DNA from: Macrostomum lignano
Lineage: Eukaryota
DNA: 64,000 nt
Direction of reading: 5' to 3'
Assembly (NCBI GenBank): GCA_002269645.1
Contig: NIVC01000200.1
Coordinates: 124,001-188,000, forward strand
Within the stretch, counting starts at the first letter, position 1, and each line of letters begins with the position of its first letter. The translations under genes and the position numbers were made by a program. The notes under the pieces were generated by a model, which had not been told where the DNA came from, ran no database searches, and saw only the letters and a list, made by a program, of their open reading frames with translations. Below, piece by piece: positions 6,622 through 45,851 of the stretch.

Positions 6622-8241
6622 TCAGGATGCACTGAACACCTGCAGTCTGCTGTTGTAATCGTCAGCCACCACCAGCTGCTCGCGCGGACCTCCCGTCACC
6701 ACCGCAAGACCCCATGGATGCCAGAATCTGCCGTCTCCGCTGCCGCTCTCGCCAGTCCCCAGAGTCCACAGCAGCGACCCGTCGTCTGCAGCCACCGCTC
6801 GCACTGAGTGACCACCATGTTCACTCACGAACAGGCGGCCTTTGCTGTCGACGGCCACATCCAATGGCCAAGCAAACTGTTGAAGGCCGGAACGCTGAGT
6901 CGGGAAGGAGGCGACCAGCTGCTGGGTGTCGATGCGAACTCTGTGCACCTGATTGTGCTTCCAGTCTGTCACCAGAATGCAGTTGTCGTGAGTCGCCAGG
7001 TTGCCAAGTCGAGCATGAGGAAGCTGAGACAGCGTGATGACCGTCTCCATCTGCCAAGTCGCTTTGCTGAATGCAGCAATTTTGTTTCCACCGGACACAA
7101 ACACGGAGGCTGCGTTGCCGCCGATTCCATTGATGTCTCCGAAGCCCTCGGTCTGTAGGCGGACTACAGCGCGACCGCTCAGGTCCGTCACTGTCACTGC
7201 GTCAGGCTGAGCAATGAACAGCAGCTGACGGTCGCAGTGAAGGCCAAAGATGTGCTCTTTCCATTCGATGTCGCAGTGACACCGCAGCTTCTGTGAGCCG
7301 TCCACAGACAGCACCAGTAGGTGGTCTCTGTTTGGACAGAATGATACAAGGATGCAGGGCTGAGGCAGAGCCCCGTAGCCGTCTTTCTTTGAATCGGCGG
7401 GAACCACACGGCCTGAGCGGTCACCAACGAATCCGCTGGTGTCGTTGCACACAACCACCCACCGGAAAAGGCCATCCAGCTTCACCTCGTGACTGAAGAC
7501 CATCGGATCGAACAGCAGTCTATGAGCAGTGTCTATCTCCTCGGATGTCGCAGTCACCGCAGCGTCTCTCGACCAGTCGCCCTCTTCACTGCGTCCCGCA
7601 CAAATGCCGACCAGCCGCTCGAGCTGGCCCAGAAGCCGCAGCTGCAGCTCCTCATTGTCGCTCTGGTCTCTGAGCAGGCGCTCTGACCTCTCAAAGTCGG
7701 CCTCCAAGTCTCCAAGCGATTCGTGCATGGACTGGACCAGGCGAAGCAGCTCCGCCATGTCGCCTGCAGCCTCCGCCGTGGCCACCTCCTGCTTGTAGCT
7801 GGAGACGTCCTCGAGGTCCCGCTCGCACACACGCACTGCCTCAAGCACACCTGAGAGCTGGCCCGTCACCCTGCTACGAAACGAGTCGATGTGTTGCTGT
7901 ACCAAATCGAATTTGTGATTGACCTCTTGCAGCTGCTGTTGGATGTCGAGAGCGAGACGACGCAGCGAATCAGCGTCTTGTCTGTGTCGCAGCAGCGCTG
8001 CACGGCCAGCTGCACCTGCTGCGCCTTGTGACTCTTGTGAGTAGGCTCGCAGCAGCTCGTCGACCTCCTCCTTGAGCTTGAATAGATTGGCCACATCGAC
8101 ACTGAGGTGTTGACTGCACATGTGGCAGCGGGAGAACGGAGCCACACCGACTGCAGCTTGGTCGCAGATGATGCAGAGAGGAGTTGGGGTAGCGGGAGAC
8201 GCGTCCGAACTCGAGCTGTCGCTGGAGTCATCAAGGCTCAT
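6622..8241 (-). CDS. Cys/His-knuckle + coiled-coil + NHL beta-propeller protein (TRIM-NHL-like, no RING), copy 1; intronless, 539 aa from ATG 8241
   Basis: N-terminal CIICDQ..RCHMCSQH, a long heptad-rich helix, and NHL-consensus blades (FAWPLDVAVDSKGRLFVSE; RFWHPWGLAV..VADDYNSRLQVF). ATG chosen from the conserved acaATGAGC start in copies 2 and 4. Confidence 0.85.
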   Translation of the reverse strand: MSLDDSSDSSSSDASPATPTPLCIICDQAAVGVAPFSRCHMCSQHLSVDVANLFKLKEEVDELLRAYSQESQGAAGAAGRAALLRHRQDADSLRRLALDIQQQLQEVNHKFDLVQQHIDSFRSRVTGQLSGVLEAVRVCERDLEDVSSYKQEVATAEAAGDMAELLRLVQSMHESLGDLEADFERSERLLRDQSDNEELQLRLLGQLERLVGICAGRSEEGDWSRDAAVTATSEEIDTAHRLLFDPMVFSHEVKLDGLFRWVVVCNDTSGFVGDRSGRVVPADSKKDGYGALPQPCILVSFCPNRDHLLVLSVDGSQKLRCHCDIEWKEHIFGLHCDRQLLFIAQPDAVTVTDLSGRAVVRLQTEGFGDINGIGGNAASVFVSGGNKIAAFSKATWQMETVITLSQLPHARLGNLATHDNCILVTDWKHNQVHRVRIDTQQLVASFPTQRSGLQQFAWPLDVAVDSKGRLFVSEHGGHSVRAVAADDGSLLWTLGTGESGSGDGRFWHPWGLAVVTGGPREQLVVADDYNSRLQVFSAS

Positions 8242-8259
8242 TGTTAGATAGACTAGCAG

Positions 8260-8392
8260 CTGAAACACGGGTTAAGTAAAAAAGTTATTGATGACACATC
8301 AGACGAAGAGAAACTATGAGAAGCTGAGGATAAGAAGATAAGTAGGATAAGTAGTTAGCTTTGGGCACTGAATGTCAAGTGTATTTTTTAAT
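8260..8392 (-). promoter_or_regulatory. Candidate intercistronic region: ATTAAA (8392-8387) after the RNPC3 stop, a pyrimidine-rich stretch, and an acceptor tttcAG (8261-8260) 18 nt before the NHL copy 1 ATG
   Basis: The motifs are seen directly; the trans-splicing interpretation is inference. Confidence 0.5.
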
Positions 8393-8432
8393 GCTGGTAG
8401 TCACACTACTTAGACGGTTCAGTAGTATAAAA

Positions 8433-9890
8433 CTAATCATTATCATCAGCGTCAGTATCGCGGGCTTGGGCAAACGCCACAACCATAGGTTTATTGTGCA
8501 GCACACAGCCATGGAGAGCTTCCAGGGCCGCAGTCGCTTCAATCGCGCTATCAAAGCTAACAAACGCTTGACAGCGCATCCGACCGGAAGTGAGCAGGCG
8601 AACTTTTCGAGCCGAATAGGGTTCGAATACTGACTCGAGATCCGATTGGACGACTGAACGGGCGAGATTCTTCAAGTAGAGCCTGTTGGCCGGCTTGCCT
8701 GGGCTGTAGTTGCGCAATGCAGCCAGCTGGGAGCGCTCCTGCTCACCTATGCGGGTCAGACAGGGAAGGGGGGCGGAACTCGGGGCGGATGACGGAGCAG
8801 GAGCGGAAATGGGGGCGGATGACGGAGCAGGAGCGGAAATGGGGGCGGATGACGGAACAGGAGCGGAAATGGGGGCGGATGACGGAGCAGGAGCGGAAAT
8901 GGGGGCGGATGACGGAGCGGATGGCACGAGCCGACCGAACCCAAAGCCAGTCTGTGGCACTTCCAGCGCTGGCAAAGCCGCAGCCGCTTGTGCAGGCGCA
9001 ACCGGAAGTGAAATTCTGGCTGGCAGACGAAGTGCCGGCGGCCGCAGCTGAGGCGGCACCGACTGGGCGGCAGTCGTCGCACCTGCGGCGGTCACCGGAA
9101 GCAGCGCTGGAGCAGGCCGCGGCTTAGGCAACAGGTGCTTCCGGCTGAACTGGGCAACAGCAGAAACAGCAGCAACTCCTCGAGGCTTCTTGGCAGCTGA
9201 AGCAGCAAAAGATAATGACGAGGGGCACTCTTCTTCTTCTTCAACTTGTTCAACAGGCTTAACATTTGCAGTTTCATCTGCGCCATCAGTGCTTGCACTC
9301 TGCCGATGGCTGGCAACCAGCTGATCCTTTGCAGCCGAGTTGCCGCGACGCAGCAAGCCGAGAACCTTTCTACGAAACCGAGCATCGTTGCGCAACAGCC
9401 ACACAGCCTCGGAGGTGGCCGCTCGTTCGGCTTCTTCAGCCGCCGTCCAGCCGCCGCCCCAGTCGAGACAAGCGGCGGCCGCCTGACAACGGCGGGCGAA
9501 TTCAACGCAAACCCGACGGCCTGCCAGCAGCTCCTCCTCGTGGAGGCACTTCAACACCGCCTTGGCCTTCGCCGAATCGTTGAACGTGGCGTACAAGCAG
9601 CCCGATAGGCGAGGATTCGGCGAGACGGCTACGGCACCGAAACCGTCGACAAAGAGCCGGTGAGCCTGGGACCAGGGCAGCTGGGCTGGCCAGCGGCGGA
9701 TGTGCAGTACTCGAGTATCTGTTATCGAGTCTGCTGATGCCTCATCATTGCGGATGCTGGAAGCTGCTTGCTGCTGCTGATGATGATGAACAGGCGGGGG
9801 CTGATGAAAGGGAGGCTGGGGCGGCGGCGGTGGCTGCGGAGCAGGCTGCCAAACCCAGCTGGGAGGAAGTTGATTGCTGTTAAAGCTTTG
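8433..9890 (-). CDS. RNPC3: RNPC3 (U11/U12 snRNP 65K), two RRMs; single long exon; start codon unresolved
   Basis: RRM1 (RVLHIRRWPAQL..YATFNDSAKAKAVLKCLH..RVCVEFAR) and RRM2 (NYSPGKPANRLYLKNLAR..SGRMRCQAFVSF..LHNKPMVVAFA) match RNPC3 as I recall it. The frame is open from about 9917 with no ATG; there is a phase-0 acceptor at 9892-9891. Confidence 0.85.
   Translation of the reverse strand, partial: QSFNSNQLPPSWVWQPAPQPPPPPQPPFHQPPPVHHHQQQQAASSIRNDEASADSITDTRVLHIRRWPAQLPWSQAHRLFVDGFGAVAVSPNPRLSGCLYATFNDSAKAKAVLKCLHEEELLAGRRVCVEFARRCQAAAACLDWGGGWTAAEEAERAATSEAVWLLRNDARFRRKVLGLLRRGNSAAKDQLVASHRQSASTDGADETANVKPVEQVEEEEECPSSLSFAASAAKKPRGVAAVSAVAQFSRKHLLPKPRPAPALLPVTAAGATTAAQSVPPQLRPPALRLPARISLPVAPAQAAAALPALEVPQTGFGFGRLVPSAPSSAPISAPAPSSAPISAPVPSSAPISAPAPSSAPISAPAPSSAPSSAPLPCLTRIGEQERSQLAALRNYSPGKPANRLYLKNLARSVVQSDLESVFEPYSARKVRLLTSGRMRCQAFVSFDSAIEATAALEALHGCVLHNKPMVVAFAQARDTDADDND
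8780..8920 (-). repeat. In-frame 30-nt coding repeat (APSSAPISAP) in the RNPC3 inter-RRM linker
   Basis: About 4.5 copies visible. Confidence 0.9.
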
Positions 9891-11197: not shown

Positions 11198-14100
11198 TCA
11201 GTGCAGCCGAGACAGCTCCTCAAGGATTCTGATCAAGTCTTCAACTGTGCATGGGACGCTGTCGGACACTGCACTGCTGAAGTCCGTCTGAAATTAACCG
11301 ATAAAGTATATAACCTGTTGGAGAATTATGTTTAAATAATAGTGAGGGCTGTGCAGCTTCTGTACGCTGGCACAGAACTCATACACACGCTCACACAGGG
11401 TGCACGGGGCTCTTGCTTTCTAAAAACAGTACTGCTCCCTCTATGTAGATAGCTAGAGAAGATACACAGGGGGAAGAGTGAGATACACAAATAGGAGAGT
11501 GAGATACACAAATGGAAGAGTGAGATACACAAATGGAAGAGTGAGATACACAAATGGAAGAGTGAGATACACAAATAGGAGTGAGATACACAAATGGGAG
11601 AGTGAGATACAAAGGGGAGAGTGAGATACACAGGAGGAAGAGAGAGATACACAGGAGAAAGAGTGAGATACACAGGAGGAAGAGTGAGATACACAAGAGG
11701 AAGAGAGAGATACACAAGAGGAAGAGAGAGATACAAAAATGGGAGAGTGAGATACACAGGGGAGAGTGAGATACACAGGAGGAAGAGTGAGATACACAAG
11801 AGGAAGAGAGAGATACAAAAATGGGAGAGTGAGATACACAGGGGAGAGTGAGATACACAGGAGGAAGAGAGAGATACAAAAATGGGAGAGTGAGATACAC
11901 AGGGGAGAGTGAGATACACAGAAAAAGGGTAGATAAAGCAGACACACCGCACCTTTCTCGTGAGTCCCTGAGCGACAGTCTCGAGTTTGTCGCGTCCCAA
12001 ATCGAGCGCAGCTTCCAGCAGATCGCCATCAATGAAATCCTTAGCCGGTTCGGTCCTGTGCTCAGTCTCAAACGATCGATATTTGGAGTGCTCAACTCCG
12101 CCAACTCCGACTATAAGACTGGCTAGCCGGCGCTGCAATTCGTTGAGAAACTCGAACAGAGGCGGCGGTAGCTGACAGATGAGACCAACTGCGCCGCTTT
12201 GAGTAGCAAATAGAATTGGAGTGCTCACAGTGACCAGGCGTTCGCCTAATTGGCTCATTACTAATGAGCCGTGTTGGAAAGTGTTAACTGTGTCGCCTAG
12301 GTGGTACCAGGCGTTCTCCTGCGTGTGTGTGACAGGGCGCATTGCTTCTAAGAGATGATAATTGATCGGTAGCAATCAGTTTTAAAAAATTTAGAGTTGC
12401 TTCAGAACAGCTACATAGCAGAGTAACACAAAGGATAGGTGAGAGTAACACACAAATTGATAAGAATAGTGTAAGCAGGAAAGCCAGCGAAACACACAGA
12501 TCTAAGATAGTGACCCACAAAGATCTAAGAGACATGCAGATCTAAGAAAGTGACGCATACAAAAGAACTGATACACATGAGAGAGTGACACACATGAGAG
12601 AGTGACGCACACGGATCTAAGAGTGACGCACACGGATCTAAGAGTGACACACATGAGAGTGACGCACACGGATCTAAGGGTGACACACATAGAGAGTGAC
12701 GCACACGGATCTAAGAGTGACACACATGAGAGAGTGACGCACACGGATCTAAGAGTGACACACATGAGAGTGACGCACACGGATCTAAGGGTGACACACA
12801 TAGAGAGTGACGCACACGGATCTAAGAGTGACACACATGAGAGTGACGCACACGGATCTAAGAGTGACACACATGAGAGAGTGACGCACACGGATCTAAG
12901 GGTGACACACATAGAGAGTGACGCACACGGATCTAAGGGTGACACACATGAGAGAGTGACGCACATGAGAGAGTGACGCACATGAGAGAGTGACGCACAT
13001 GAGAGAGTGACGCACACGGATCTAAGAGTGACGCACACGGATCTAAGAGTGACACACATGAGAGTGACGCACACGGATCTAAGGGTGACACACATAGAGA
13101 GTGACGCACACGGATCTAAGAGTGACACACATGAGAGAGTGACGCACACGGATCTAAGAGTGACACACATGAGAGTGACGCACACGGATCTAAGGGTGAC
13201 ACACATAGAGAGTGACGCACACGGATCTAAGAGTGACACACATGAGAGTGACGCACACGGATCTAAGAGTGACACACATGAGAGAGTGACGCACACGGAT
13301 CTAAGAGTGACACACATGAGAGTGACGCACACGGATCTAAGGGTGACACACATAGAGAGTGACGCACACGGATCTAAGAGTGACACACATGAGAGTGACG
13401 CACACGGATCTAAGAGTGACACACATGAGAGAGTGACGCACACGGATCTAAGAGTGACACACATGAGAGAGTGACGCACACGGATCTAAGGGTGACACAC
13501 ATGAGAGAGTGACGCACATGAGAGAGTGACGCACATGAGAGAGTGACGCACACGGATCTAAGAGTGACGCACACGGATCTAAGAGTGACACACATGAGAG
13601 TGACGCACACGGATCTAAGGGTGACACACATAGAGAGTGACGCACACGGATCTAAGAGTGACACACATGAGAGAGTGACGCACACGGATCTAAGAGTGAC
13701 ACACATGAGAGTGACGCACACGGATCTAAGGGTGACACACATAGAGAGTGACGCACACGGATCTAAGAGTGACACACATGAGAGTGACGCACACGGATCT
13801 AAGAGTGACACACATGAGAGAGTGACGCACACGGATCTAAGAGTGACACACATGAGAGAGTGACGCACACGGATCTAAGGGTGACACACATGAGAGAGTG
13901 ACGCACACGGATCTAAGAGTGACACGCATGAGAGAGTGACGCAAACGGAACTAAGAGTGACACGCATGAGAGAGTGACGCACACGGATCTAAGGGTGACA
14001 CGCATGAGAGAGTGACACACACGGATCTAAGAGTGACACACATGAGAGAGTGACGCACACGGATCTAAGAGTGACACACATGAGAGAGTGACGCACACGG

Positions 14101-17100
14101 ATCTAAGAGTGACACGCATGAGAGAGTGACACACACGGATCTAAGAGTGACACGCATGAGAGAGTGACACACACGGATCTAAGAGTGACACGCATGAGAG
14201 TGACATATAAGAGTGACACGCATGAGAGTGACACATAAGAGTGACACGCATGAGAGTGACACATAAGAGTGACCCGCATGAGAGTGACACACATAAGAGT
14301 GACACACACAAGAGAGTGACACAAACCTGCAGTCTTGGCCTCTCCTCCCCGCCAGAGTTCTCCGACTCTCTTGAGCACACAAACAGATTGCCGCAATTCT
14401 CTGCGCCCAGAAATGCATCGTCGTCGATAATTTCAATGGCGAACATCCAGTTAGGCGCGTGATCTCTGGCGATCTCTTCCAGACTGGTTTCGACCGGCTT
14501 GTACAGCAGCAGGGACATGCTGCGTAGCAGGTCGCCAACCAGAGCGAAATCCCCTTTAGTTTTGAGGTACAGAGCGATGATGTTGTTAAAGTGGGAGCAT
14601 TCCAATCGGAGTTCCCGTTCGTTTTCGCTCCATTCGAATAGGCGGACGGAACTGTTAACGCAGACCAGAAGGCGCTGGTTGAAGCAGCACATTGAGTAGG
14701 GCGCGCCTCGGATCTCCTTCTCCGCTACCTGGCGGGCGGGAAATTGGGAAGCTGCTAGTGAGCGACAGCTGATCAGATGGGGAAATCTCAACTTCTAGAA
14801 GATTATATCAGATGGGGAAATCTCAACTTCTAGGAGATTCTATCAGATGGGGAAATCTCAACTTCTAGGAGATTCTATCAGATGGGGAAATCTCAACTTC
14901 TAGGAGATGCTATCAGATGGGGAAATCTCAACTTCTAGGATATTCTATCAGATGGGGAAATCCCAACTTCTAGGAGATTCTATCAGATGGGGAAATCTCA
15001 ACTTCTAGGAGATTCTATCAGATGGGGAAATCTCAACTTCTAGGAGATTAAATAGATAGGGAAATCTCAACTTCTAGGAGATTCAATAGATAGGGAAATC
15101 TCAACTTCTAAGAGATTCAATAGATAGGGAAATCTCAACTTCTAGGAGATTCTATCAGATGGGGAAATCTCAGCTTAGGGAGAGATTCTCTTAAATGGGG
15201 AAATCCCAGATTAGGGGAGATTCTATGAAAATGGGGAAATCCCGAAGTAGGAGAGATTCTCTCAAATGGCGAAATCTCATCTCGAGGGAGATTTTCTCAA
15301 ATATTATCTGGAAAAAATATCAGATGTCTATAGATCAATGATAAGTACCCAGAAGAGCTTAGCTAATATCAGAAGCAATACCTTAGTCAGATAAGGACTA
15401 TCTGCGGAATACTGCAGCATTAGCAGCCTCCCAGCAGACGGTTCAGACTCATTAGGCCGTATATAGCAGGTGCCAACTACGAAATAGGTGGCGCAATCGG
15501 TGCCAAACTGGCCTGAGGTGATACTAGTGGCAGTCTCAACGCAGCTCGGATTCGATGGAAACTGCATCGAGCAGAGCGGTTGCAAAGAATTCTGTTCTAG
15601 CAGTACTACAGAGGTCACTTCGAGTTCTTCATCAACTTCGGCTGATGAGGCTGCGGCGGCGGCGGCAGCAGCGGCGGCGGAAGCTACGGTGGCAGCGGCG
15701 CCGACCATACCGGACGCGTGCGGATGATGTCGCTTGCCGGCAGCTGTGGCGGCTCCATCCGGTGTGAGCTGGATCGGGGCAGTGACAGAGACAGAGGATC
15801 TGGCAGGAGCATAGCCGCCTTCGTGACGCAGATCAACCCGGGAGGTGACCACGGCTAGGGTGCCGGACTCGGGTTGGTGAGCCACCTTTCTGGCAGATTC
15901 GCCTAGCGGCAGAGTTCGAATGTGCAGCTTCTGCATGTCGTCTATGGTGCCGAATAGTAACTGGCTGTTGGTTACTAGGCAGATGCACTGTTGCGGCTGC
16001 TGGGCATCGCTAGACGCTGCTGATAGTAGTATAGGGCACACGTAATTCACTTGGCGAGTGTTCACGTGGGAGATTACCTGGTTGAAGGGTTTGGTCATTT
16101 TTTATATGATAGGGATATACTCAGGTGATGAGTGGGGTATACTCAGGTGATGAGTGGGGTATACTCAGGTGATGAGTGGGGGTATACTCAGGTGATGAGT
16201 GGGGGTATACTCAGGTGATGAGTGGGGTATACTCAGGTGATGAGTGGGGTATACTCAGGTGATGAGTGGGGATATACTCAGGTGATGAGTGGGGGTATAC
16301 TCAGGTGATGAGTGGGGTATACTCAGGTGATGAGTGGGGTATACTCAGGTGATGAGTGGGGTATACTCAGGTGATGAGTGGGGTATACTCAGGTGATGAG
16401 AGGGGATATACTCAGGTGATGGGTGGCGTTAAATAGTAAAAACTCACCAGCTTCCCCGAAACGCAGTGAGCAATGGCTGGTCTGTCAGTGCAGACAAACA
16501 AGCTCTGAGAAGGCAGCCAGCACAATCCCATAGGTTGAGTACCAATAATCACGTGCTTCCTATTAACCAGAGCGGGCCCGGGTACAACGGTAAAGTACAC
16601 CATTGTGCCGTCCCCGATGCCAACGAATAGATAAACACCGCAGGGCATTGTGGCCAGGACTATGGAGCGCGGAATGATCTGCAACAGTAATTGGAGTGGG
16701 ATGAATAGAGATAAATATAATAGGTCAACATGACACACCTGCATATAGATCTAATGGGTGTAAACATACTGCAGATAGATCTAATGGGTCAACATGACAC
16801 ACCTGCATATAGATCTAATGGGTGTAAACATACTGCAGATAGATCTAATGGGTCAACATGACACACCAGCATATAGATCTAATGGGTCAACATACTGCAG
16901 ATAGATCTAATGGGTCAACATACTGCAGATAGATCTAATGGGTCAACATACTGCAGATAGATCTAATGGGTCAACATACTGCAGATAGATCTAATCGGTA
17001 AACATGCTGCAGATAGATCTAATGGGTCAACATACTGCAGATAGATCTAATGGGTCATTATACTGCAGATAGATCTAATGGTTCAACATACTGCAGATAG

Positions 17101-20100: not shown

Positions 20101-23100
20101 GAGAACTCTATAAAAATATAGGCAGGCTAGAATGTTTTTAGTAAATATAGGGCGGTTTTTTTCAAAGAAGGGAAGGATTTCTAGTATTATTATTGCCAGG
20201 AAAATAATACTTAGACACGATGTGGCAACTTTTACTGTGCTATTCGGCATCCAACAACAACAGTCAGGCGTGGGACAATGTCAACAGGGCGCGTTTCAGG
20301 GCCTTGGCGCCAGCGTAGGCAGCACAGCCGGCATCAGCCAGCAGGCAGTCGACGAAACGCCGAGTGCGCGCCTGCAGCGTCAGCAGCAGCACCTCCTGCA
20401 CCGGCTGACAGCGTGGAAGCCTCGTCACCTGCCCATCAGCGCCTCGACAGAAAATTGCAGTCTCGATGTCGTCCGGAACGCAGAGCACGACGGTCTTCTG
20501 CGTGTTGACTACCAGGCCAACACTCGCCCAGCCAAGCAACAGAACGAACAGGAACGGCGCAAGCGCATCTCGATGAAGCACCCCGGACTTCGGAGGATGT
20601 CTTAAAGAAGTCCGATAGGCCGTCCAGTCTTGAAACAGCAGCTTTCGTATCACGGTACATCGCCATGATGGCGAATATCAGCTGCTCTGGCACGTTGTAC
20701 GCACAGATCACCTTTGGGAGCACAGACCTTACGGCCGAGTCGAATGCCTTCTTGATGTCTATGAAGATGACAATCAGGATCGATTGGGGTGTCCGCGCTT
20801 CCTCGATAACTTGCTGAATAGCCAGGATCTGCTGCGTTACTGTGCCGCGATGGGGCCGGAAGCCGTTCTGCTCAGGACGCAGGTACGGATCCAGTACGGG
20901 CTGCAACTGCGATAACAGCATCCGGATGAACAACTTCGCAGTGCAGGACTGAAGGCAGATACCTCGATGCTCCTCTAGCCGTGTGGTGTCCGGCTTTTTA
21001 GGAACTGCGACGATGTGCACCGTGGTCCATTCGTTGGGAGCACGCGATTCATCACCCTGGCGACCTCACTGGCCACACAGTAGATGCGCGGCAGAGACGG
21101 CCCGAATGGCGTCATCAACAGCAGTCTGCAGTCGCTGCAGATAGACAGCCGCCAAGGCCTCCTCTGCCTCGCGGGTTGGTCTCCTGCTCAAGCGGAGTCT
21201 TTCCAGCTCTTCCCTCGCTTGCCGAATCGCGGAGTCGTCTTGCCATACCGGCTGCCCCTACTAGGCTGGTCGTATCAGCGGGACTGCTTGTTCCACAGCA
21301 GCTCGAACAGCAGCACACAACTCCACGTACTCGGCACCTCCACGCTTGCCGCCGAGCGCAGTGATGAAAGTGCTGGTAAAGCGGCTGTTTGTGTCAACAT
21401 CCAGATTGTGACTTGTGAGACAAAGGTCACAGATGAGGAGTCGATGATCGAACTGCAGAGTCAGCGGCCTGATGGCATTGTTACTGGCATCCTGGGTCTT
21501 AATTTGAGATGCCGAGTTGAAAAAGTTCAAAATCAAATAAAATACCTGCGCCTTTTAGATCCACAGAGGTCTGCAGACTCTATGCTTACAGGGTACTTAA
21601 ATCTGACAGTTAATATAAGTCTTGAAATTCCAGTGATTATAAATTTATTGATCCTTCAATCAAATTTGAATAACAAAAAAAACAAATGGCAGCCAGATTG
21701 AAAAATGGGTTACTAATTTGGCATCTGGAGATGATATGCCATGACATAAAAACCCAGCTGATATTACTAGATAATAAAATAGATACCTGAGGCTGAAATC
21801 CAAGCAGTACACTGATCTTGCCATATATAGAGATCTCCTTAATAGTCTTGACGCCACTGGAGCTGACAACATGTAACTCGAGAGTGTTGTGCTTGGCAAC
21901 TAGCAAATTTCTATGATTCTTGCCAGTGAAATGACCTGTTGTTGAGTTGATGTTATGATTAATTATTATTAAGTATAAGTGATACACATAACTTATCAAA
22001 AGCAATATAAACTTGAAAAAGATGATATCAAAACAAAAAATAGGCCTAACTGAAAAATGTTACTTTTACAAACTAGAAAATCAAATAATGCTTAAAAGCC
22101 CACTAAAATAAAATAAAACACTACCAAACTTTTGTAATTTGAGAACTTGAAAAGCCTAATAAATCAAATAAGCAAATAAATGAAAGAAAAGTATATTGAA
22201 TAAAATCTTATAATTTTTTATTTGGTATAACAGTCTTTTATAAATTTCTATGAACTAATCTTTAGAGATCCTTTTTCAAATCAAATATAGTATATTTTTT
22301 GTTTGTTTTAACTATTAAATACTATATTTTAGCCAAGGTCTAAAATGCACTAGACACCCCCTTTGAATACTTAATGGCACCAATATGCCAGATTGTGTCT
22401 ATATAACTAGGAGTCAATCCCCACAAGACACTGTCTACAATAATGGCCATTGGCTGCCATAAGGATTTAAAATATATTTTTCTTTTGTTTTTACCTATAT
22501 ACCTTTTTACAATTTTTTGTATTTGATTAGATTGGTTTTGCAACAAACTCTTTATGGCCACCATCACCTAGCTAGGTAAGCTAAATATTTAACATGTAAA
22601 GATAAATAGCAAAATTAGTTTTAGTCTTTAAAATAGGTTAGGCTTATCAATTATCATTCATTTATTGTTCTATATCAGTGGCGGCACAGTACCTCCTATT
22701 GGGGGGAGGGGGTGGTAGTTGGGTGGTCACCTCTTCCCCTAGCAAATTTTCTGAATTAGAGTAGTGCATTACTCTAAAATCTCACAAAAGTGCATATAAT
22801 AAGCTTATAATAAACAATTATGGTGGGTTACCCTATAAAGGGATAGAGATGTTCCGAAATTTTGATTTCGATTTCGATTTTCCGAAATTCGGATTTTTTA
22901 GAGCAAATTTTGATTTCGAAAAAATTTTGGAAGTCAAAATTTCGGAAGTGCCTACTTCTGAAATTTTTATTTGATTTTAGTTTTTTTAGAACTTTGTTAC
23001 TGTCTTTTATCGGTGATATTATACAGTTTTTACATGTAAAACTTTTTGAATTTGTTAAAACTGTTCCATGCATGTAGGACATGTAATATGGTAGTTTGTA

Positions 23101-26677: not shown

Positions 26678-27480
26678 CTTAAAAAAGTTATTAAAATGAC
26701 TTAAAATGACCTTTAACCTTTAGACGCTCTTTCAAATACCTTACTTTTACAAATATCGTAACTCGCATCGTAACTCGTGTAAAAATTTAACCTTTTGAAC
26801 AAATACTAAATACATCGGATTATACTGGCAAAACAGGCTCCTTAAGCCTGCGCCAAATTTACTACTACCTTAGAAATTAATATTTGTCTGATTAGAGCTG
26901 CTGTTTCTATGTAATTCAATGACTTGCTTTTCTAAGTCTAATTGACTCTAATAATAATCTTTAACTTCAGAAAAAATAGTTAGTATAGTTTGACTTGATT
27001 TTCGAGATAGATAGACATCATTTCAAGATAGGCCCTAGGCCTACAAAATAGGCCTACATTACTCATTCGCTTATCAGTGATCATTCAGGTCTAATTTCAA
27101 GGTCCAGTTTTGACTTTTGAACATATCAAAAATATATCTTATCTTAATTATTTTATTTATTTATCTTTTATTATCAATATCTTTTTGTTTTTTTTATTTA
27201 GAGCCACGTGGCTTGTTTAATTTTGCTAGTAAATAGGCCTAGTAATGTTTCAAATGGATTAAAGAGATCCTACACATTAAGTTGTAAAATAACTTAGTAG
27301 GCCTATTTGGCTATTTGTTTCATTATTTTTCAAAATAAAAAACTAAGTTTATTTAAATTTACATTCTAAAATATAGTTAAAATACATGCAATAGTTTTTT
27401 GGCATTATATAAGCATCAAAGTATCAATCAATACTTTACAAAAGGAATTTAAAAAAAAAGTTCTAAGCCTTGGTATGAAG

Positions 27481-28577: not shown

Positions 28578-28639
28578 GTGTGAAGGAGAGAGAATTGGAC
28601 AAAAACATTTAGCTCTTTTTCACTAAGCCTTGGTAAATG

Positions 28640-29874: not shown

Positions 29875-33005
<3,131 letters not shown>

Positions 33006-34730: not shown

Positions 34731-36422
34731 ATGAGCCTAAAACGTCACAGCGACAGCTCAAGTTTGGACGCGCCTCCCGCTACCCCAACTCCTCTCTGCA
34801 TCATCTGCAACCAAGCTGCAGTCGGTGTGGCTCCGTTCTCCCGCTGCCACATGTGCAGTCAACACCTCAGTGTCGATGTGGCCAATCTATTCAAGCTCAA
34901 GGAGGAGGTCGACGAGCTGCTGCGTGCCTACTCACAAGAGTCACAAGACTCACGAGAGTCACAAGGCTCACAAGAGTCACAAGGCGCAGCAGGTGCAGCT
35001 GGCCGTGCAGCGCTGCTGCGACACAGAAAAGACGCTGAGTCGCTGCGTCGTCTCGCTCTCGACATCCAACAGCAGCTGCAAGAGGTCAATCACAAATTCG
35101 ATTTGGTACAGCAACACATCGACTCGTTTCGTAGCAGGGTGACGGGCCAGCTCTCAGGTGTGCTTGAGGCAGTGCGTGTGTGCGAGCGGGACCTCGAGGA
35201 CGTCTCCAGCTACAAGCAGGAGGTGGCCACGGCGGAGGCTGCAGGCGACATGGCGGAGCTGCTTCGCCTGGTCCAGTCCATGCACGCATCGCTTGGAGAC
35301 TTGGAGGCCGACTTTGAGAGGTCAGAGCGGCTGCTCAGAGACCAGAGCGACAATGAGGAGGTGCAGGTGCGGCTTCTGGGCCAGCTCGAGCGGCTGGTCG
35401 GAATTTGTGCGGGACGCAGTGAAGAGGGCGACTGGTCGAGAGACGCATCGGTGAACGCCAGACCGGAGGTGAGAGACACTGCGGTGACGGCGAGACCCGA
35501 GGACATAGACGATCCTCAGAAAATGTTGCAGCCGATGGTCTTCAGTCACCAGGTGGAGCTGGATGGCGATGTTACATGCCTGGCTGTGTGCAGCGACACC
35601 AGCGGATTTGTTGGTAACCGCTTAGGCCATGTGGTTCCCACCGATTCAGCGGAAGACGGCAGCGAGGCTCTGCATCAGCCCTGCATTATTGCCTCTCTAT
35701 TGAATAGAGACCACCTACTGGTGCTGTCTGTGGACGGCTCACAGAAGCTGCAGTGCCACTGCGATATCGACTGGAAGCAGCGCATCTGTGGCCTTCACTG
35801 CAATCGTCAGCTGCTGTTCATTGCTCAGGATGACGCAGTGACAGTGACGGACCTGAGCGGTCGTGCGGTGCGTCGAGTCCGCCCATTCATCAAGGACTTC
35901 GGTGACATCAAGGGAATCGGCGGCAACGCGGCTTCCGTGTTTGTGTCCAGTGGAAACAAAATTGCTGCATTCAGCAAAGCGACTTGGCAGATGGAGACGG
36001 TCATCACGCTGTCTCAGCTTCCTAGTGCTCTACTGGGTAACCTGGCGACTCACGACAACTGTATTCTTGTGAGAGACTGGAAGCGCAAGCAGGTGCACAG
36101 AGTGCGCATCGACACCCAGCAGCTGGTCGCCTCCTTCACAAATCAATCTTCTGGCATCCAACAATTTGCTCATCCAGTGGATGTGGCCGTCGACAGCAGA
36201 GGCCGCCTTTTCGTGTGTGAATTGTGGGGTCACTCAGTGCGAGCGGTGGCTGCAGACGACGGCTCGCCACTGTGGACTCTGGGGACTCCGGGCAAAAGGG
36301 GAATCGGAAACGGCAGATTCGACGGTCCATGGGGTCTGGCGGTGGTGACGGGAGGTCCGCGCGAGCAGCTGGTGGAGGCTGACTGTAGGAACAGCAGACT
36401 GCAGGTGTTCAGTGCATCCTAA
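34731..36422 (+). CDS. Cys/His-knuckle + coiled-coil + NHL propeller protein, copy 2; intronless, 563 aa
   Basis: Paralog of copies 1 and 4, with a near-identical N-terminal half and a divergent propeller. Confidence 0.85.
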   Translation: MSLKRHSDSSSLDAPPATPTPLCIICNQAAVGVAPFSRCHMCSQHLSVDVANLFKLKEEVDELLRAYSQESQDSRESQGSQESQGAAGAAGRAALLRHRKDAESLRRLALDIQQQLQEVNHKFDLVQQHIDSFRSRVTGQLSGVLEAVRVCERDLEDVSSYKQEVATAEAAGDMAELLRLVQSMHASLGDLEADFERSERLLRDQSDNEEVQVRLLGQLERLVGICAGRSEEGDWSRDASVNARPEVRDTAVTARPEDIDDPQKMLQPMVFSHQVELDGDVTCLAVCSDTSGFVGNRLGHVVPTDSAEDGSEALHQPCIIASLLNRDHLLVLSVDGSQKLQCHCDIDWKQRICGLHCNRQLLFIAQDDAVTVTDLSGRAVRRVRPFIKDFGDIKGIGGNAASVFVSSGNKIAAFSKATWQMETVITLSQLPSALLGNLATHDNCILVRDWKRKQVHRVRIDTQQLVASFTNQSSGIQQFAHPVDVAVDSRGRLFVCELWGHSVRAVAADDGSPLWTLGTPGKRGIGNGRFDGPWGLAVVTGGPREQLVEADCRNSRLQVFSAS

Positions 36423-36957
36423 TTTTATCCAGAGACCGAATAAACTGTGGAGTGATTGATTTTGTGGAGGCTGGTCTATCGTTCGAGTTTTTCTTATTAT
36501 GGAACGGGTACGGATAGTCTTAACCAGCACTACTGTGTGAGGGCGTCAGAGGCCAATCAAAGTAATATAGATGACTTAGAGGAGGGAGTGGCACTGAGCG
36601 CTATACACTGATACTAATATAGCTCAAGTGAACTATCTAGGTTACATAGTATCGTTGCATCTGTGTAACAATTGTTGGTTGATATTTTTGCGCAGGTTTT
36701 TTTTACTATTTTTTGTTTTGTCTTTCCGTAGTAAACAATTAGTAATTTAATTGTAGCTTTTTAACATACCCTGTAATGCGCTGCATGTTGAGGAAATCAT
36801 TAATAACATATTTCATAGCTTGTTTACAAAATTTATATTGAGTGACAAACTGGTATTTGACTAAATAAGCTTTGATTATTTATCTTTATCTGATATGAAT
36901 CTCCGTTCAAACAATCAGTCACAAAGATTAAAATAGACAGGTAATTTAAGCCAAGTA

Positions 36958-37454
36958 AGCTACTTTAAGGCACCACACATTGAGCGCAGGTTCTGGAGAT
37001 GGCCACGTTAACCTTAAAGCAACTTTCCGCTTCTATAGTGAGAACTCGGATCGGTGTTTTAAAGCGTAAAAAAATTTACTGACAGTAATCGCTTCTTGGT
37101 GCGCCATCTTGGCAATCGCAGAAACACCTCAACCGGTCAATTATTACGCCCGGAATCTCGTAACCAAGGAGCGAATTCTTCAGCGGTTTCGGAGCAAGCA
37201 TGAGGCTGAGGCGGCCCGTCCTGCTTATCGTAAAGATCTTTGCTAAGCCCAAACGGATATTCAGCATTCTAGATTATTTTTATTCGTTGGAATGGATTAA
37301 CAGTTTGTCGACACCAAGACTAGACAGTAAAGAGAAGAATAATGTTGTCGTCATGGGAACCTCCAGGCTTTGGGATCAATGCTGCAGCCTCATTTTATCT
37401 TCGCGGTGAAGAAACTTAATGTAACGTCATGTCCCGGACATCTACAAATATTCT
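36958..37454 (+). repeat. ~500-bp direct repeat, copy A; supplies the 5' end of NHL copy 3
   Basis: Matches 39970-40475; the only differences I saw are a 10-nt indel and a 1-nt homopolymer difference. Confidence 0.95.
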
Positions 37455-38953
37455 TCGAAAGCGGGACATCTTCCACCGTCGTTGCGCCGGGAACTCGACC
37501 TCTGGTGCAAGAGTTGCAGATTAGCGGTCAGCTAAAATGTATTGAAAACGAATGCCTATTGATGCAAGGCGAATTAGATAATTTTTATCAGCGAGTTCAG
37601 CTTCAGATTAAAGAATACTTGAATGCTGTACGAACTTGTCATAATGGTCTCAATGATACTCAAAACTACAGACAGGAAGTGGCCGCAGCGGAGGCTGCAG
37701 GCAATATTTCAGAAATTGCAAAGCTGTCAATGTCTATGCAGCTGTCCATTCCCGATCTGCAAGCTGAATTTGACTTGGCGCAACGCCTTCGGCTTGAAAA
37801 TGACTGTGTCGAGATGCAGTTGCGACGGTTTAGACAGATAGAGAAACTTGTTGGCAGTGTTGCAACTGATAGGAACTCAGGTGTGACTGACGCAGCTGTT
37901 TCTGCTCTACCAGATGTTAGAGACGCCGAGTCAACAGCTAGTCCAACTCTGCTTAGCGCTGCCGTTACTGCAAGACCAATTGGTATTGATATTGAAACGA
38001 CCGTCGCACCCGAGGTCTGTGACGCCTCGCTCACCGCTAGCGACTCGCCGTTTGATCCAATTGTGTTCAGTCATCAAGTTCCATTAAATGGTCAGGTGGA
38101 CCTGTTGACTGTGTGCAGCGACACTCGCGGATTTGTTGGCGAACCAAGCTCAGGTCTTGTGGTGTCCATTAATGCAGCTGGTGACGATCGCGAGGCACTG
38201 CCTGAGCCCTGCATCTTTGCCAGAGTCAGTGGCTGTAGCCATTTAAGAGTGCTGTCCGTGGACGGAGCGCGGAGACTGCGCTGTCAGGGTGACTTCGATT
38301 TCAAACAGAACATCTGCAGTCTTCATTGCGATCGTCAGCAACTGTTTATTGCCCAGCGCAGCTCCGTGAAAGTGACAGTAACTGACTTGAGCGGTCGCGT
38401 GGTTTTTCAAATAGAGCCACAGATTGAAGATTTCGACGAGATCAGAGGCATCAGTTGCAACGCAACTAATTTATTTATTAGTTGTGACAACAAAATTGCT
38501 GTATTGCACAAGTTGATTGGCCAATTGGAGACGGTCATCACGTTGCCGGGTGCTTTGGATATGCGCAACCTGACGGTTTATCGCGACAGTATCATGGTGG
38601 TAGACTGTGAGAGTTGGCAGGTCCATAAAGTGCACATAGACAGCCAGCAGTTGGTCTGTTCTTATCCAAGTGATGCTTCCGGCCTCCAACAGTTTGCTTG
38701 GCCAATGGATGTGGCCGTCGACAGAAGAGGCCGCCTGTTCATGAGTGAAAACGATGGTCACTCAGTGCGAGCGGTGGCTGCTGACGACGGGTCGCTGCTG
38801 TGGACTCTGGGCACTCCGGGCGAGAGCGGTTTTGATGGCAATAGACTCAACCGTCCTTGGGGTCTGGCGGTGGCCACGGGAGGTCCACGCGAGCAGCTGG
38901 TGGTGGCTGACTATTTAAACTCGCGATTGCTAGTGATTGATGTAGATTCTTAA
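37379..38953 (+). CDS. Divergent coiled-coil + NHL propeller paralog, copy 3; lacks the Cys/His knuckle; 524 aa from ATG 37379
   Basis: Homology to the other copies starts near 37500 (QEVAAAEAAG, VFSHQV, CDRQQLFIAQ, QQFAWPMDVAVD, NRPWGLAV..ADYLNSRL). The ORF is uninterrupted. The true start is uncertain. Confidence 0.75.
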   Translation: MLQPHFIFAVKKLNVTSCPGHLQIFFESGTSSTVVAPGTRPLVQELQISGQLKCIENECLLMQGELDNFYQRVQLQIKEYLNAVRTCHNGLNDTQNYRQEVAAAEAAGNISEIAKLSMSMQLSIPDLQAEFDLAQRLRLENDCVEMQLRRFRQIEKLVGSVATDRNSGVTDAAVSALPDVRDAESTASPTLLSAAVTARPIGIDIETTVAPEVCDASLTASDSPFDPIVFSHQVPLNGQVDLLTVCSDTRGFVGEPSSGLVVSINAAGDDREALPEPCIFARVSGCSHLRVLSVDGARRLRCQGDFDFKQNICSLHCDRQQLFIAQRSSVKVTVTDLSGRVVFQIEPQIEDFDEIRGISCNATNLFISCDNKIAVLHKLIGQLETVITLPGALDMRNLTVYRDSIMVVDCESWQVHKVHIDSQQLVCSYPSDASGLQQFAWPMDVAVDRRGRLFMSENDGHSVRAVAADDGSLLWTLGTPGESGFDGNRLNRPWGLAVATGGPREQLVVADYLNSRLLVIDVDS

Positions 38954-43400: not shown

Positions 43401-43783
43401 TGGGAGGCTGATGCTGCTCAATTAGTGAAGGAGACTGAAGAATGAGACAGTTATCCGGAAAATTCGGGTTCATCATCCACCCCAGAAATTCTGCTGACAG
43501 TCCTGCTCAGTGAACTTAACTCGCTGAATTGACTGAACCAGTTGCCAGTGCTGCACATGTAGTTCCAGAATCACAGATCCCATCCCAATCTGTTAGATGC
43601 AGGAGTGCATCCGGAGTTTCTGACAGCGCTTTAATGCACGAGTACATGAAAATTGGGTTTTGTATGTGCACTTACTTTTTTGTACCTTCCATCAATTTCC
43701 AAAAACTTCAACTTTTCAAAGCACTCATATTTTAACAACAATTTCCCAGCTAAAAATATCTGAGCCAATGCATATAAAACACA

Positions 43784-44180
43784 GCAGTGACCCATTGAGA
43801 AAAATGCAACACAGAAGCGAGCGCTGAGTCTGCAGCGAGTGAGGAGAATTAAAGCAAACTGCATGCCATTTTTGCTGAAATTCAATTCAAAGTCAAGTCC
43901 CAGTTTCTGGTGCTGAAACTTCTAGAAATAGAAAAACAATGAGAGAAGTTATGAGGACCGTTTCATTTAATTACTTAATACATTCATAATGTTTATTGTG
44001 CTTCTATTCAATAATTATCAAATTCTGAATATGCTGGACGGAACAAACAATTATCGGACAAAGAAATTCATCGCGTGTTGAAAATTTATTATAAGAGAAA
44101 CTCGATCGAAAACCCGACCTTTAATAAATCAATCACTCCAGTAAGACTACAGTTTAATTATTTTCGGCAAGTGAATAAAA
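43784..44180 (-). repeat. 3' flank of NHL copy 4, homologous to 6223-6621
   Basis: Same shared blocks as 6223-6621. Confidence 0.9.
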
Positions 44181-45851
44181 TTAGGATGCACTGAACACCT
44201 GCAGTCTCATGTTGCCTCTGTCAGCCACCACCAGCTGCTCGCGTGGACTTCCCGTCACCACCGCAAGACCCCATGGACGGTTGAATCTGCCGTCTCCGCT
44301 GCCGCTCTCGCCCGAAGTCCCCAGAGTCCACAGCAGCGACCCGTCGTCTGCAGCCACCGCTCGCACTGAGTGACCCCACAATTCACTCACTAACAGGCGG
44401 CCTCTGCTGTCGACGGCCACATCCAATGGCCAAACAAACTGTTTAAGGCGAGAACTCTGAGTCGGGAAGGAGGCGACCAGCTGCTGGGTGTCGATGCTCA
44501 CTCTGTGCACCTGATCGTGCTTAAATTCTGTCACCAGAATGCAGTTGTCGTGAGTCGCCAGGTTGCGCAGATCAGCACGAGGAAGCTGAGACAGCGTGAT
44601 GACCGTCTCCATCTGCCAAGTCGCTTTGCTGAATGCAGCAATTTTGTTTCCACTGGACACAAATACGGAGGCTGCGTTGCCGCCGATTCCCTTGATGTCA
44701 CCGAAGTCCTCGATGTGTGGGCGGACTCGACGCACCGCGCGACCGCTCAGGTCCGTCACTGTCACTGCGTCAGGCTGAGCAATGAACAGCAGCTGACGAT
44801 CGCAGTGAAGACCCCAGATGACCTTCCTCCAGTCGATGTCGCAACGGCACCGCAGCTTCCGTGAACCATCCACAGACAGCACCAGTAGGTGTTTTCTGTT
44901 CGGAAGGAATGATGCAAAGATGCAGGGCTGAGGCAGAGGTTTTCTGCGTTTTCTGCGGTCTCCCGCTGAGTCGGCGGGAACCACACGGCCCAAGCGGTTA
45001 CCAACGTATCCGCTGGTGTCGCTGCTCACAGCCAGCCATTGAACTGGGCGATCCAGCTTCACCTCGTGACTGAAGACCATCGGCTCTAACATTCTCTGAG
45101 CAGCGTCTATCTCCTCGGATGTCGCGATCACAGCAGCGTCTTTCGAACAGTCACCCTCTTCACTGCGTCCCGCACAAATGCCGACCAGCCGCTCGAGCTG
45201 GCCCAGAAGCCGCAGCTGCACCTCCTCATTGTCGCTCTGGTCTCTGAGCAGCCGCTCTGACCTCTCAAAGTCGGCCTCCAAGTCTCCAAGCGATTCGTGC
45301 ATGGACTGGACCAGGCGAAGCAGCTCCGCCATGTCGCCTGCAGCCTCCGCCGTGGCCACCTCCTGCTTGTAGCTGGAGACGTCCTCGAGGTCCCGCTCGC
45401 ACACACGCACTGCCTCAAGCACACCTGAGAGCTGGCCCGTCACCCTGCTACGAAACGAGTCGATGTGTTGCTGTACCAAATCGAATTTGTGATTGACCTC
45501 TTGCAGCTGCTGTTGGATGTCGAGAGCGAGACGACGCAGCGACTCAGCGTCTTGTCGGTGTCGCAGCAGCGCTGCACGGCCAGCTGCACCTGCTGCGCCT
45601 TGTGACTCTTGTGACTGTTGTGACTCTTGTGAATCTTGTGAGTCTTGTGAGTAGGCACGCAGCAGCTCGTCGACCTCCTCCTTGAGCTTGAATAGATTGG
45701 CCACATCGACACTGAGGTGTTGACTGCACATGTGGCAGCGGGAGAACGGAGCCACACCGACTGCAGCTTGGTTGCAGATGATGCAGAGAGGAGTTGGGGT
45801 AGCGGGAGGCGCGTCCGAACTCGAGCTGTCGCTGGAGCTGCTGTGGCTCAT
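44181..45851 (-). CDS. Cys/His-knuckle + coiled-coil + NHL propeller protein, copy 4; intronless, 556 aa from ATG 45851
   Basis: Paralog of copies 1 and 2; shares about 400 bp of 3' flank with copy 1. Confidence 0.85.
   Translation of the reverse strand: MSHSSSSDSSSSDAPPATPTPLCIICNQAAVGVAPFSRCHMCSQHLSVDVANLFKLKEEVDELLRAYSQDSQDSQESQQSQESQGAAGAAGRAALLRHRQDAESLRRLALDIQQQLQEVNHKFDLVQQHIDSFRSRVTGQLSGVLEAVRVCERDLEDVSSYKQEVATAEAAGDMAELLRLVQSMHESLGDLEADFERSERLLRDQSDNEEVQLRLLGQLERLVGICAGRSEEGDCSKDAAVIATSEEIDAAQRMLEPMVFSHEVKLDRPVQWLAVSSDTSGYVGNRLGRVVPADSAGDRRKRRKPLPQPCIFASFLPNRKHLLVLSVDGSRKLRCRCDIDWRKVIWGLHCDRQLLFIAQPDAVTVTDLSGRAVRRVRPHIEDFGDIKGIGGNAASVFVSSGNKIAAFSKATWQMETVITLSQLPRADLRNLATHDNCILVTEFKHDQVHRVSIDTQQLVASFPTQSSRLKQFVWPLDVAVDSRGRLLVSELWGHSVRAVAADDGSLLWTLGTSGESGSGDGRFNRPWGLAVVTGSPREQLVVADRGNMRLQVFSAS

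Follow-up and report, generated by a model that had tools for sequence, protein, structure and literature searches.

TRIM-NHL proteins (TRIM71/LIN-41, TRIM2/3, TRIM32/Thin, Brat and Mei-P26) carry a zinc module, a coiled coil and a C-terminal NHL propeller, and the known genes are conserved, low-copy developmental regulators. The rapidly evolving TRIM-B30.2 genes (primate TRIM5alpha/TRIM22; fish finTRIM and btr) are clustered, and encode a constant oligomerising N-terminus together with C-terminal recognition loops that are under selection. In fungal NLR genes (HET-E/HET-D/NWD), the WD40, ANK and TPR repeats have hypervariable positions and show diversifying selection, concerted evolution and recombination; near-identical internal repeats are exchanged within and between genes, and the proteins contain a NACHT/NB-ARC NTPase and an effector domain. 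Here we describe a multigene family of the flatworm Macrostomum lignano whose proteins end in an NHL-type beta-propeller. It was followed from a stretch of 64,000 nucleotides of genomic DNA (NIVC01000200.1:124001-188000, assembly GCA_002269645.1), which is referred to as the window. Diversifying selection drives and preserves amino acid replacements at ∼24 codons of the propeller. Interlocus gene conversion homogenises the coding sequence (CDS), with its strongest effect on the coiled coil, and it generates mosaics by transferring variable patches from copy to copy.

The family shares with TRIM-NHL proteins the combination of a zinc module, a coiled coil and a C-terminal NHL propeller, and finds its best sequence and fold matches among them. 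Its variable positions are those that LIN-41 uses for RNA on the “upper” face, and, like Brat, it has no RING. It differs in the absence of a RING, a Pfam-detectable B-box and a filamin domain, in the presence of one CCCH knuckle, and in being encoded by intronless genes in dozens of tandem copies, with a ratio of nonsynonymous to synonymous divergence (dN/dS, or omega) of ∼9 on the binding face. The 27 strands of the modelled propeller may in addition point to an extra, seventh blade. The evolutionary mode is the same as that of TRIM-B30.2 genes (clustered copies, a constant N-terminal part and selection in C-terminal recognition loops), but the M. lignano family uses NHL and not SPRY/B30.2, has no RING E3 and belongs to a flatworm, not a vertebrate; an antiviral role of the M. 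lignano family would be a proposal by analogy. As in fungal NLRs, a beta-propeller face (WD40 in the fungi) has a few hypervariable positions under diversifying selection and concerted evolution. In M. lignano, however, exchange takes place between paralogous genes, and no NTPase domain was found by Pfam in the window copies. Homogenisation of internal repeats, as in fungal WD40 NLRs, was considered and rejected because the propeller CDS contains no internal direct or tandem repeats at the DNA level (Tandem Repeats Finder, TRF, and repeat comparison).

Coral tachylectin-2-type propeller lectins are reported to show high amino acid diversity and positive selection (PMC2880987). These too are invertebrate beta-propeller recognition proteins, but they have an unrelated five-bladed lectin fold, are of the secreted or lectin type and have no coiled coil. 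For the M. lignano family itself no published description was found in the literature on NHL or TRIM-NHL expansion, on diversifying selection or under the gene identifiers, in agreement with the initial annotation of the window, and the proteins are annotated as hypothetical. What appears to be new is the use of an NHL propeller in a diversifying family of receptor type; the evolutionary mode itself is already known.

The initial annotation had placed four open reading frames (ORFs) of this family in the window, and all four are present there in the ORF list and in translation. Window positions 32.8-51.4 kb have a 97-98.5% identical syntenic counterpart on NIVC01000303.1 (locus L006; allele or homeolog), where copies are designated with a prime. 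The copies and the segments adjoining them are as follows:

6622..8241, minus strand: copy 1 (c1), intact CDS of 539 amino acids with Pfam NHL; 130622-132241 of NIVC01000200.1, same strand
6625-7506, minus strand: propeller of c1
34731..36422, plus strand: copy 2 (c2), intact CDS of 563 amino acids
35514-36419, plus strand: propeller of c2
36955..37450, plus strand: unrelated 496-bp segment upstream of c3, from pairwise alignment with L006 and BLAST breakpoints
37379-38953, plus strand: ORF of copy 3 (c3) as read
37451..38953, plus strand: homologous part of c3, 5'-truncated; the only stretch matching the intact L006 copy
43784..44180, minus strand: c4 3' flank, homologous to its c1 equivalent (6223-6621) by self-BLAST
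44181..45851, minus strand: copy 4 (c4), intact intronless CDS of 556 amino acids with Pfam NHL (3e-10); TRIM71 NHL in the PDB search (4e-24)
45852..45911, minus strand: 5' leader of c4, ∼60 nt, common to most copies in the upstream alignment

Copy 4 was used as the reference for residue numbering, such that the codon of c4 residue r occupies window positions 45851-3r+1 to 45851-3(r-1). Proteins of copies 1, 2 and 4 are 79-87% identical, varying with pair and region, and c3 represents a divergent subfamily with ∼50% amino acid identity to c4. The genes are intronless; the annotated gene of protein P0001 consists of exactly 556 codons and a stop. Copy 3 had been taken for a full copy, which it is not. 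Relative to its 98%-identical counterpart c3' (NIVC01000303.1; L006 15145-16893), which is intact, encodes 582 amino acids and has the zinc knuckle, the first 83 codons of c3 (ATG and zinc knuckle) and the region upstream have been swapped for the unrelated 496 bp. The ATG at 37379 is therefore fortuitous, and c3 of the window is probably a truncated allele or a pseudogene.

The duplication unit comprises the ∼60 nt leader, the CDS and ∼400-500 nt of 3' flank. A TTTCAG acceptor-like site is located ∼25 nt ahead of the ATG, within the shared leader, and upstream homology beyond the leader ends in low-complexity repeats. Retroposition as the origin of the intronless copies was rejected. Homology runs ∼30 nt upstream of TTTCAG and continues downstream for ∼400-500 nt, and the flanks that some duplicates have in common extend over kilobases; duplication therefore occurred at the DNA level.

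Variable codons reported initially were exact. Within GCT GAC nnn nnn AAC, copies 1 to 4 have GAT TAC, TGT AGG, TAT TTA and AGA GGC, and within RF-xx-P copies 1, 2 and 4 have TGG CAT, GAC GGT and AAC CGT. The propellers of c2 and c4 differ at 63 amino acids over 297 codons (∼60 over 300 had been claimed), and the 43-residue block DFGDIK...SQLP is identical in both, again as claimed. Near-identity of the N-terminal parts of these two copies also held, but the ∼5 nucleotide differences reported were too few: we count 11/633 from codon 21 and 21/693 from codon 1. Across 12 paralogs, hypervariable columns hold 4-8 different residues between invariant neighbours, a pattern that is far beyond chance.

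Each protein consists of one CCCH zinc knuckle, ∼185 residues of long helices, a disordered linker and the propeller, in that order. For c4 these parts are encoded at:

45717..45785, minus strand: zinc knuckle, residues 23-45, C23-x2-C26 ... C39H40-x-C42-x2-H45, from alignments
45599..45650, minus strand: coding 9-nt repeat, (SQE/SQD)n, between knuckle and coiled coil, from TRF and alignment indels
45171..45725, minus strand: helical/coiled-coil region, residues 43-227, near-identical among paralogs
44184..45089, minus strand: beta-propeller, residues 255-556, AlphaFold2 (AF2) model with predicted local distance difference test (pLDDT) 94.8 and predicted template modelling score (pTM) 0.92

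Knuckle ligands are kept across subfamilies as C-x2-4-C-x13-17-C-x2-H, directly before the helical region. The third Cys is replaced in L004_d and L004_e, two copies from a second cluster on the same contig (RCH to LSH), and in c3' (LNN). Because only C-x2-C ... C-x2-H is universally retained, the alignments suggest a single zinc site. In the full-length AF2 model, helices span residues 43-81, 87-171 and 174-227 with moderate pLDDT, and these long coiled-coil-like helices directly follow the zinc module; confidence is low for the N-terminal zinc part of the model. Paralogs differ in the copy number of (SQE/SQD)n by 0-4 extra units.

In the window copies Pfam detects only NHL repeats (3e-10). 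Among solved structures, the best relatives are the NHL domains of TRIM71 (4e-24 to 4e-27), Thin/TRIM32 and TRIM2/3, and the top Foldseek matches are those of Thin, TRIM2, TRIM71 and TRIM3, with template modelling (TM) scores of 0.70-0.77 and root-mean-square deviations of 3.2-3.9 Å. DSSP assigns 27 strands and seven A-strand-like starts to the c4 propeller model (302 residues); seven-bladed WD40 domains also match it (TM ∼0.62), and six-bladed NHL domains match best.

No RING was matched by Pfam at E<=1 in the window copies or at E<=0.01 in ten related subfamily members. Likewise, no zf-B_box match was obtained at E<=1 in the window copies, or in 10 distant subfamily members. Only four or five Cys/His precede the coiled coil. 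UniProt names relatives “B box-type domain-containing”, which is all that speaks for a B-box, as Pfam gives no match and the ligands suffice for one zinc; a UniProt “RING-type” label on two old gene models of a distant subfamily is not confirmed by Pfam. With both Pfam searches negative, membership in TRIM was not assigned, and the family is therefore termed TRIM-NHL-like. The TRIM affinity implied by the initial mention of TRIM-like coiled coils is borne out by the coiled coil and the NHL propeller, but is weak with no RING and no Pfam B-box. The N-terminus is rich in Ser and Asp and has no hydrophobic leader or signal peptide, so the protein is presumably cytoplasmic.

For analysis of DIVERSIFYING selection, a codon alignment of 15 sequences was prepared and models were run on 12 paralogs. 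Likelihoods were computed with our own Goldman-Yang codon program using F3x4 frequencies, a neighbor-joining (NJ) tree and branch lengths taken from M0 and then scaled. Log likelihoods (lnL) for the propeller (298 codons) were:

M0: lnL -4361.3, omega 0.66
M1a: lnL -4243.0
M2a: lnL -4072.9, 10.8% of sites at omega 9.3
M7: lnL -4252.9
M8: lnL -4075.1, 11.2% of sites at omega 9.4

Twice the difference in lnL (2dlnL) is 340 for M1a versus M2a and 355 for M7 versus M8, with ∼51-54% of propeller codons at omega ∼0.2. Because recombination is present, the test was repeated on six 50-codon partitions with their own trees and branch lengths; M1a versus M2a then gave 2dlnL=243, with 9.5% of sites at omega 9.0. 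Codons with a posterior above 0.95 by naive empirical Bayes (NEB) were designated as selected (n=24). In c4 these are 269, 271, 297, 316, 317, 319, 344, 346, 360, 387, 425, 427, 441, 443, 444, 474, 476, 491, 492, 524, 525, 545, 546 and 548.

Recombination cannot raise a tree-free minimum count, which is a lower bound. By this measure the 58 nonsynonymous sites of the 24 selected codons have undergone at least 104 replacements (1.79 per site), compared with 0.47-0.49 silent changes per silent site over the propeller as a whole. Minimum changes at codon positions 1:2:3 are 46:44:25 for selected codons and 103:73:127 for the rest of the propeller, and therefore favour selection on the amino acid over a frame-blind hot spot. 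Selected codons are enriched for R (16.8% versus 6.3%), W (8.4% versus 1.5%) and Y (4.9% versus 0.3%). The signal in the N-terminal half is weak (2dlnL=23; sites 4, 5, 83 and 213), and omega for the propeller as a whole is 0.66-0.91, not above 1. The site-specific positive selection proposed at the outset was thus recovered by site models, at omega ∼9 for ∼10% of codons, and held up in the partitions and the tree-free count. Note that a dN/dS of 1 or less at the variable sites had been named beforehand as evidence to the contrary; the value found there is ∼9.

To locate the selected codons, loop classes were set beforehand from DSSP strands over model residues 52-300, a range in which the blade register could be read without ambiguity. 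Loops of the B-C and D-A type counted as top and those of the A-B and C-D type as bottom, with the following divergence:

top loops, 79 codons: dN 0.251, dS 0.205, omega 1.22 (bootstrap 0.86-1.76)
bottom loops, 44 codons: dN 0.038, dS 0.114, omega 0.34
strands, 126 codons: dN 0.055, dS 0.101, omega 0.54

Top loops account for 19 of the 21 selected codons that could be assigned and bottom loops for none (Fisher p=8e-9); the remaining two are no more than 2 residues from the top end of a strand. By loop class, nearly all of the assignable selected residues thus belong to one face, as had been anticipated. Three parts of c4 contain several of them:

44208..44219, minus strand: last-blade B-C loop, AD-xx-N-x, with selected codons 545, 546 and 548
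44277..44282, minus strand: D-A loop, RF-xx-P, with selected codons 524 and 525
44376..44432, minus strand: blade with F-x-W-P-x-D (selected 474 and 476) and SE-xx-GH (selected 491 and 492)

In a TRIM71 profile alignment, c4 residues 474, 476, 492, 527 and 545 align with Y658, W660, R676, R707 and F722 of zebrafish LIN-41 (DrLIN41), and residue 491 aligns with T675. This alignment agrees with the 658/660/676/707/722 spacing and with the LIN-41 residue (683) at which the aligned blade ends. According to Kumari et al. 2018 (PMC5908797), the five DrLIN41 residues Y658, W660, R676, R707 and F722 are in contact with an RNA stem-loop on the “upper” surface. Several variable positions, as initially supposed, are therefore RNA-contact positions of a LIN-41 protein by profile alignment, and RNA binding on the top face of the M. 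lignano propeller is predicted from this positional homology.

The near-invariant N-terminus had been regarded as a constrained scaffold, and this interpretation did not survive. Omega under M0 is 0.65 for the N-terminal half versus 0.66 for the propeller, and the respective tree lengths are 0.53 and 2.12. Mean pairwise dS by region (NG86) rises from 0.027 (coiled coil) through 0.06 (knuckle region) to 0.10 (propeller strands), so that silent divergence of the coiled coil is ∼4-fold below that of the propeller strands. Lower silent divergence at equal omega implies that N-terminal invariance results from gene conversion. Untranslated flanks differ by 0.2-0.38 (p-distance) and are more diverged than any part of the CDS. 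The CDS is therefore younger than its flanks, which argues that the copies have evolved in concert through interlocus gene conversion, with the greatest effect in the 5' half. Of the alternative raised with the initial claim, namely conversion of the N-terminus beside a neutrally diverged propeller, the first part is correct; the propeller is clearly not neutral.

Individual tracts could be recognised. L004_d and L004_e are recent segmental duplicates whose flanks are 0-0.4% diverged over several kilobases and whose N-terminal halves differ by ∼1.5%, but their propellers differ at 75/900 nt (8.3%), and a nearest-neighbour map resolves L004_e into a mosaic with segments of d, b and g. Copy 2 is identical to its L006 counterpart except at CDS nt 1080-1260, where c2 is c4-like and the counterpart is L004_g-like; this is a candidate conversion tract. 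The pairwise homoplasy index (PHI) gave p=0.0005, and at least 27 recombination events are required in the propeller (Rm=27). When restricted to third positions, which offer few sites, PHI did not reach significance (p=0.09-0.36); evidence for recombination is based on all informative sites together with the explicit mosaics. dS declines with distance from selected codons, from 0.17 (1-2 codons) to 0.125 (3-5), 0.113 (6-10) and 0.084 (>10), as would be the case if selection opposed homogenisation around those codons.

The “four-gene family” of the initial annotation proved to have many more members by tblastn and profile search. At least 16 copies at ≥80% identity were found by tblastn in five fetched loci and the window. 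In addition to the four copies of the window and the counterparts on NIVC01000303.1, a second cluster (L004, NIVC01000200.1:280294-334562), ∼92 kb off on the same contig, has at least eight copies, three copies are on NIVC01001900.1 (L001, L003), and one divergent copy is on NIVC01000032.1 (L005). L004 includes 4 intact copies, 3 frameshifted copies and 1 fragment, with b/f and d/e as near-identical segmental duplicates; the frameshifted copies may be pseudogene donors or assembly indels. Glyoxalase-domain genes are interspersed among the L004 copies. Intact ORFs of ∼550 codons were found in nine copies.

All 14 close protein homologs examined are M. lignano entries of GCA_002269645.1. A HMMER profile search covering 1.84 billion representative proteins found full-length relatives of ∼500-580 amino acids in at least 10 clusters below 50% identity. 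The ten full-length relatives that were looked up are all M. lignano proteins, and the other relatives from this search were short JGI metagenome contigs only (P0016, P0017). The family is thus Macrostomum-specific, tandemly clustered, intronless and multigenic. No conserved partner gene was found, as neighbours differ between the clusters examined (RRM ORF, SET, glyoxalase, tuberin, PHD), and a multi-gene “system” was rejected because no neighbour is kept between clusters. In copy c4' (L006 7345-9931; matching window positions ∼45403-45961), a ∼2.55-kb AT-rich, ORF-free segment interrupts the gene past codon ∼152, and annotation therefore keeps only its 383-residue C-terminal product (P0007). 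This segment may be an insertion, a new intron or a mis-assembly; c4 of the window is intact.

Overall, these data are probably best explained by a duplicated and converted NHL family that serves as a germline repertoire of intracellular binders. Local segmental duplication yields new copies. By analogy with TRIM proteins, the coiled coil would mediate oligomerisation. Ligands would be bound on the propeller top face, where each paralog would present a different R/W/Y-rich surface, such that the family would constitute a germline-encoded repertoire for rapidly changing ligands. RNAs or proteins of viruses or transposons would be the most likely ligands because the homologous positions of LIN-41/TRIM71 contact RNA; the ligands may be RNAs, judging from the LIN-41 correspondence and the R/W/Y enrichment. 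With no RING present, their mode of action would be binding, sequestration or (Brat-like) repression, and not ubiquitination of their own. We can put forward only tentatively the fuller reading in which tandem cassettes exchange top-face patches by conversion and so become binders of viral or transposon RNA or protein, with broken copies included as donors, and in which the family is a RING-less, RNA-directed counterpart of TRIM5/finTRIM. Defence against viruses or transposons is our leading guess, to which host-partner co-evolution or reproductive conflict is a serious rival. Self/non-self recognition has no specific support.

Explanations that dispense with selection for new specificities were compared against the same data. 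If the 5' half had simply been homogenised recently and the propeller represented older neutral divergence, no adaptive diversification would be needed; conversion and mosaicism are indeed demonstrated, coiled-coil dS is ∼4-fold below that of the propeller at equal omega, and whole-propeller omega stays at 0.66-0.91. That average, however, conceals a heterogeneous propeller, with about half of its codons near omega 0.2 and a tenth near 9. Replacements gather in one loop class beside conserved bottom loops and strands, and the independent replacements counted at the 24 codons far exceed the ∼0.48 silent changes per silent site. Flanks, moreover, are more diverged than propeller strands, which indicates that the propeller itself is partly homogenised and not neutral. 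Conversion as the sole cause is thus largely refuted, and we regard it as highly improbable. Hypermutation, or error-prone repair or conversion at loop patches, could instead create mutational hot spots without selection for specificity. Third positions do change ∼2x more often per codon at selected codons (25/24 versus 127/274), dS is raised beside them, and the L004_d/L004_e propellers differ by 8.3% inside near-identical flanks. A frame-blind process would nevertheless hit all codon positions equally, whereas positions 1 and 2 here change ∼1.8x as often as position 3, the rest of the gene shows the opposite pattern, and codons directly beside selected ones are invariant. Much of the d/e difference matches other paralogs, pointing to conversion and not to new mutation, and raised dS nearby is expected if selection blocks homogenisation. 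Hot spots are therefore an improbable source of the pattern.

Redundant haplotypes, homeologs or decaying pseudogenes in a repeat-rich, part-duplicated PacBio assembly would give an artefactual family, and the near-identity of 32.8-51.4 kb to another contig fits this, as do the copies with frameshifts, truncation or insertion. But the four window copies are on one contig with propellers that differ by 10-13%, there are nine intact ORFs, strands and bottom loops are under purifying selection (omega 0.34-0.54), and pseudogenes would not give loop codons at omega ∼9 next to invariant neighbours; an artefact is very hard to credit. The explanation that competes more directly with a repertoire for defence is that these are endogenous Brat/LIN-41-like regulators, subfunctionalised to host mRNAs or partners in, for example, the germline, neoblasts or reproduction, and changing rapidly through host co-evolution or sexual conflict. 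Their nearest solved relatives are RNA-binding developmental regulators, the selected positions match RNA-contact positions of those relatives, and no immune-type domain or signal peptide was found in the window copies (Pfam and translations). An omega of ∼9 at the binding face, dozens of young tandem copies and patch shuffling would be atypical for such regulators, although reproductive conflict remains compatible with these features. We consider this explanation possible but rather doubtful.

Several points weigh against a diversifying repertoire as we describe it. Top loops as a class have an omega of 1.22 with a bootstrap interval that includes 1. Codons 269 and 271 (first N-terminal loop) and 297 are not confidently placed on the face, and “top face” was defined by strand/loop parity, NHL-motif register and LIN-41 alignment, not by coordinates; the propeller model would accommodate either 6 or 7 blades. 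The codon-model code is our own, with NJ topologies, M0-scaled branch lengths and NEB in place of Bayes empirical Bayes, and only 12 sequences were used, three of them with frameshift masking. Optimisation of M8a was imperfect (slightly below M1a), and M1a/M2a and M7/M8 were quoted instead. Recombination inflates likelihood-ratio tests, a concern that the partitioned and tree-free tests lessen but do not remove. The broken or truncated copies (c3; L004_b, f and g; c2' and c4' in L006) indicate that part of the family may be decaying. Ligand and biological role are pure inference.

Other features of the window were as follows. The RRM ORF may represent a neighbour of copy 1 or a gene co-transcribed with it; this arrangement was not observed beside the other copies. 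The tuberin-like ORF fits a tuberin/Rap-GAP gene beside c4' in L006. The 398-bp inverted repeat, which is accompanied by internal direct repeats, may be a foldback or terminal inverted repeat element. Minisatellite arrays give long spurious ORFs, and those at 30.2, 54.7 and 63.3 kb are mutually related (74-92% identity). Annotation of the window for tRNA and Rfam families found nothing.

881-1801, plus strand: ORF with ionotropic glutamate receptor ligand-binding domain (3e-31), exon-like
8433-9596, minus strand: ORF with RRM domain (Pfam 5e-10), ending 190 bp upstream of the c1 ATG on the same strand
12493-14323, 30246-30785, 54701-55650, 57760-58995 and 63304-63514: minisatellite arrays, among others
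15328-16098, minus strand: ORF with weak CPSF_A-like match, exon-like
22000-28000: AT-rich block (GC 0.29-0.31)
25431-25828 and 26254-26651: arms of the 398-bp inverted repeat within this block, 97.7% identity
52823-53458, minus strand: ORF with weak tuberin-like match, exon-like

In this family the NHL fold, usually seen as a conserved low-copy developmental or RNA regulator, appears to serve as a hypervariable module for recognition. Tandem expansion, concerted scaffold evolution, omega of ∼9 on the binding face and shuffling of patches together make up an evolutionary signature like that of TRIM5/finTRIM, MHC or fungal NLR repeats. The family also illustrates cleanly how a gene is shaped jointly by conversion and diversifying selection. 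If the repertoire reading is true, this would be the first NHL domain used as a variable immune-type receptor, and, should viral or transposon RNAs or proteins prove to be the ligands, the family would represent a new class of invertebrate intracellular immune receptor. M. lignano is a laboratory model with RNAi and transgenesis. Whatever its function, the family provides a natural library of NHL top-face variants, which could show how NHL specificity is encoded.

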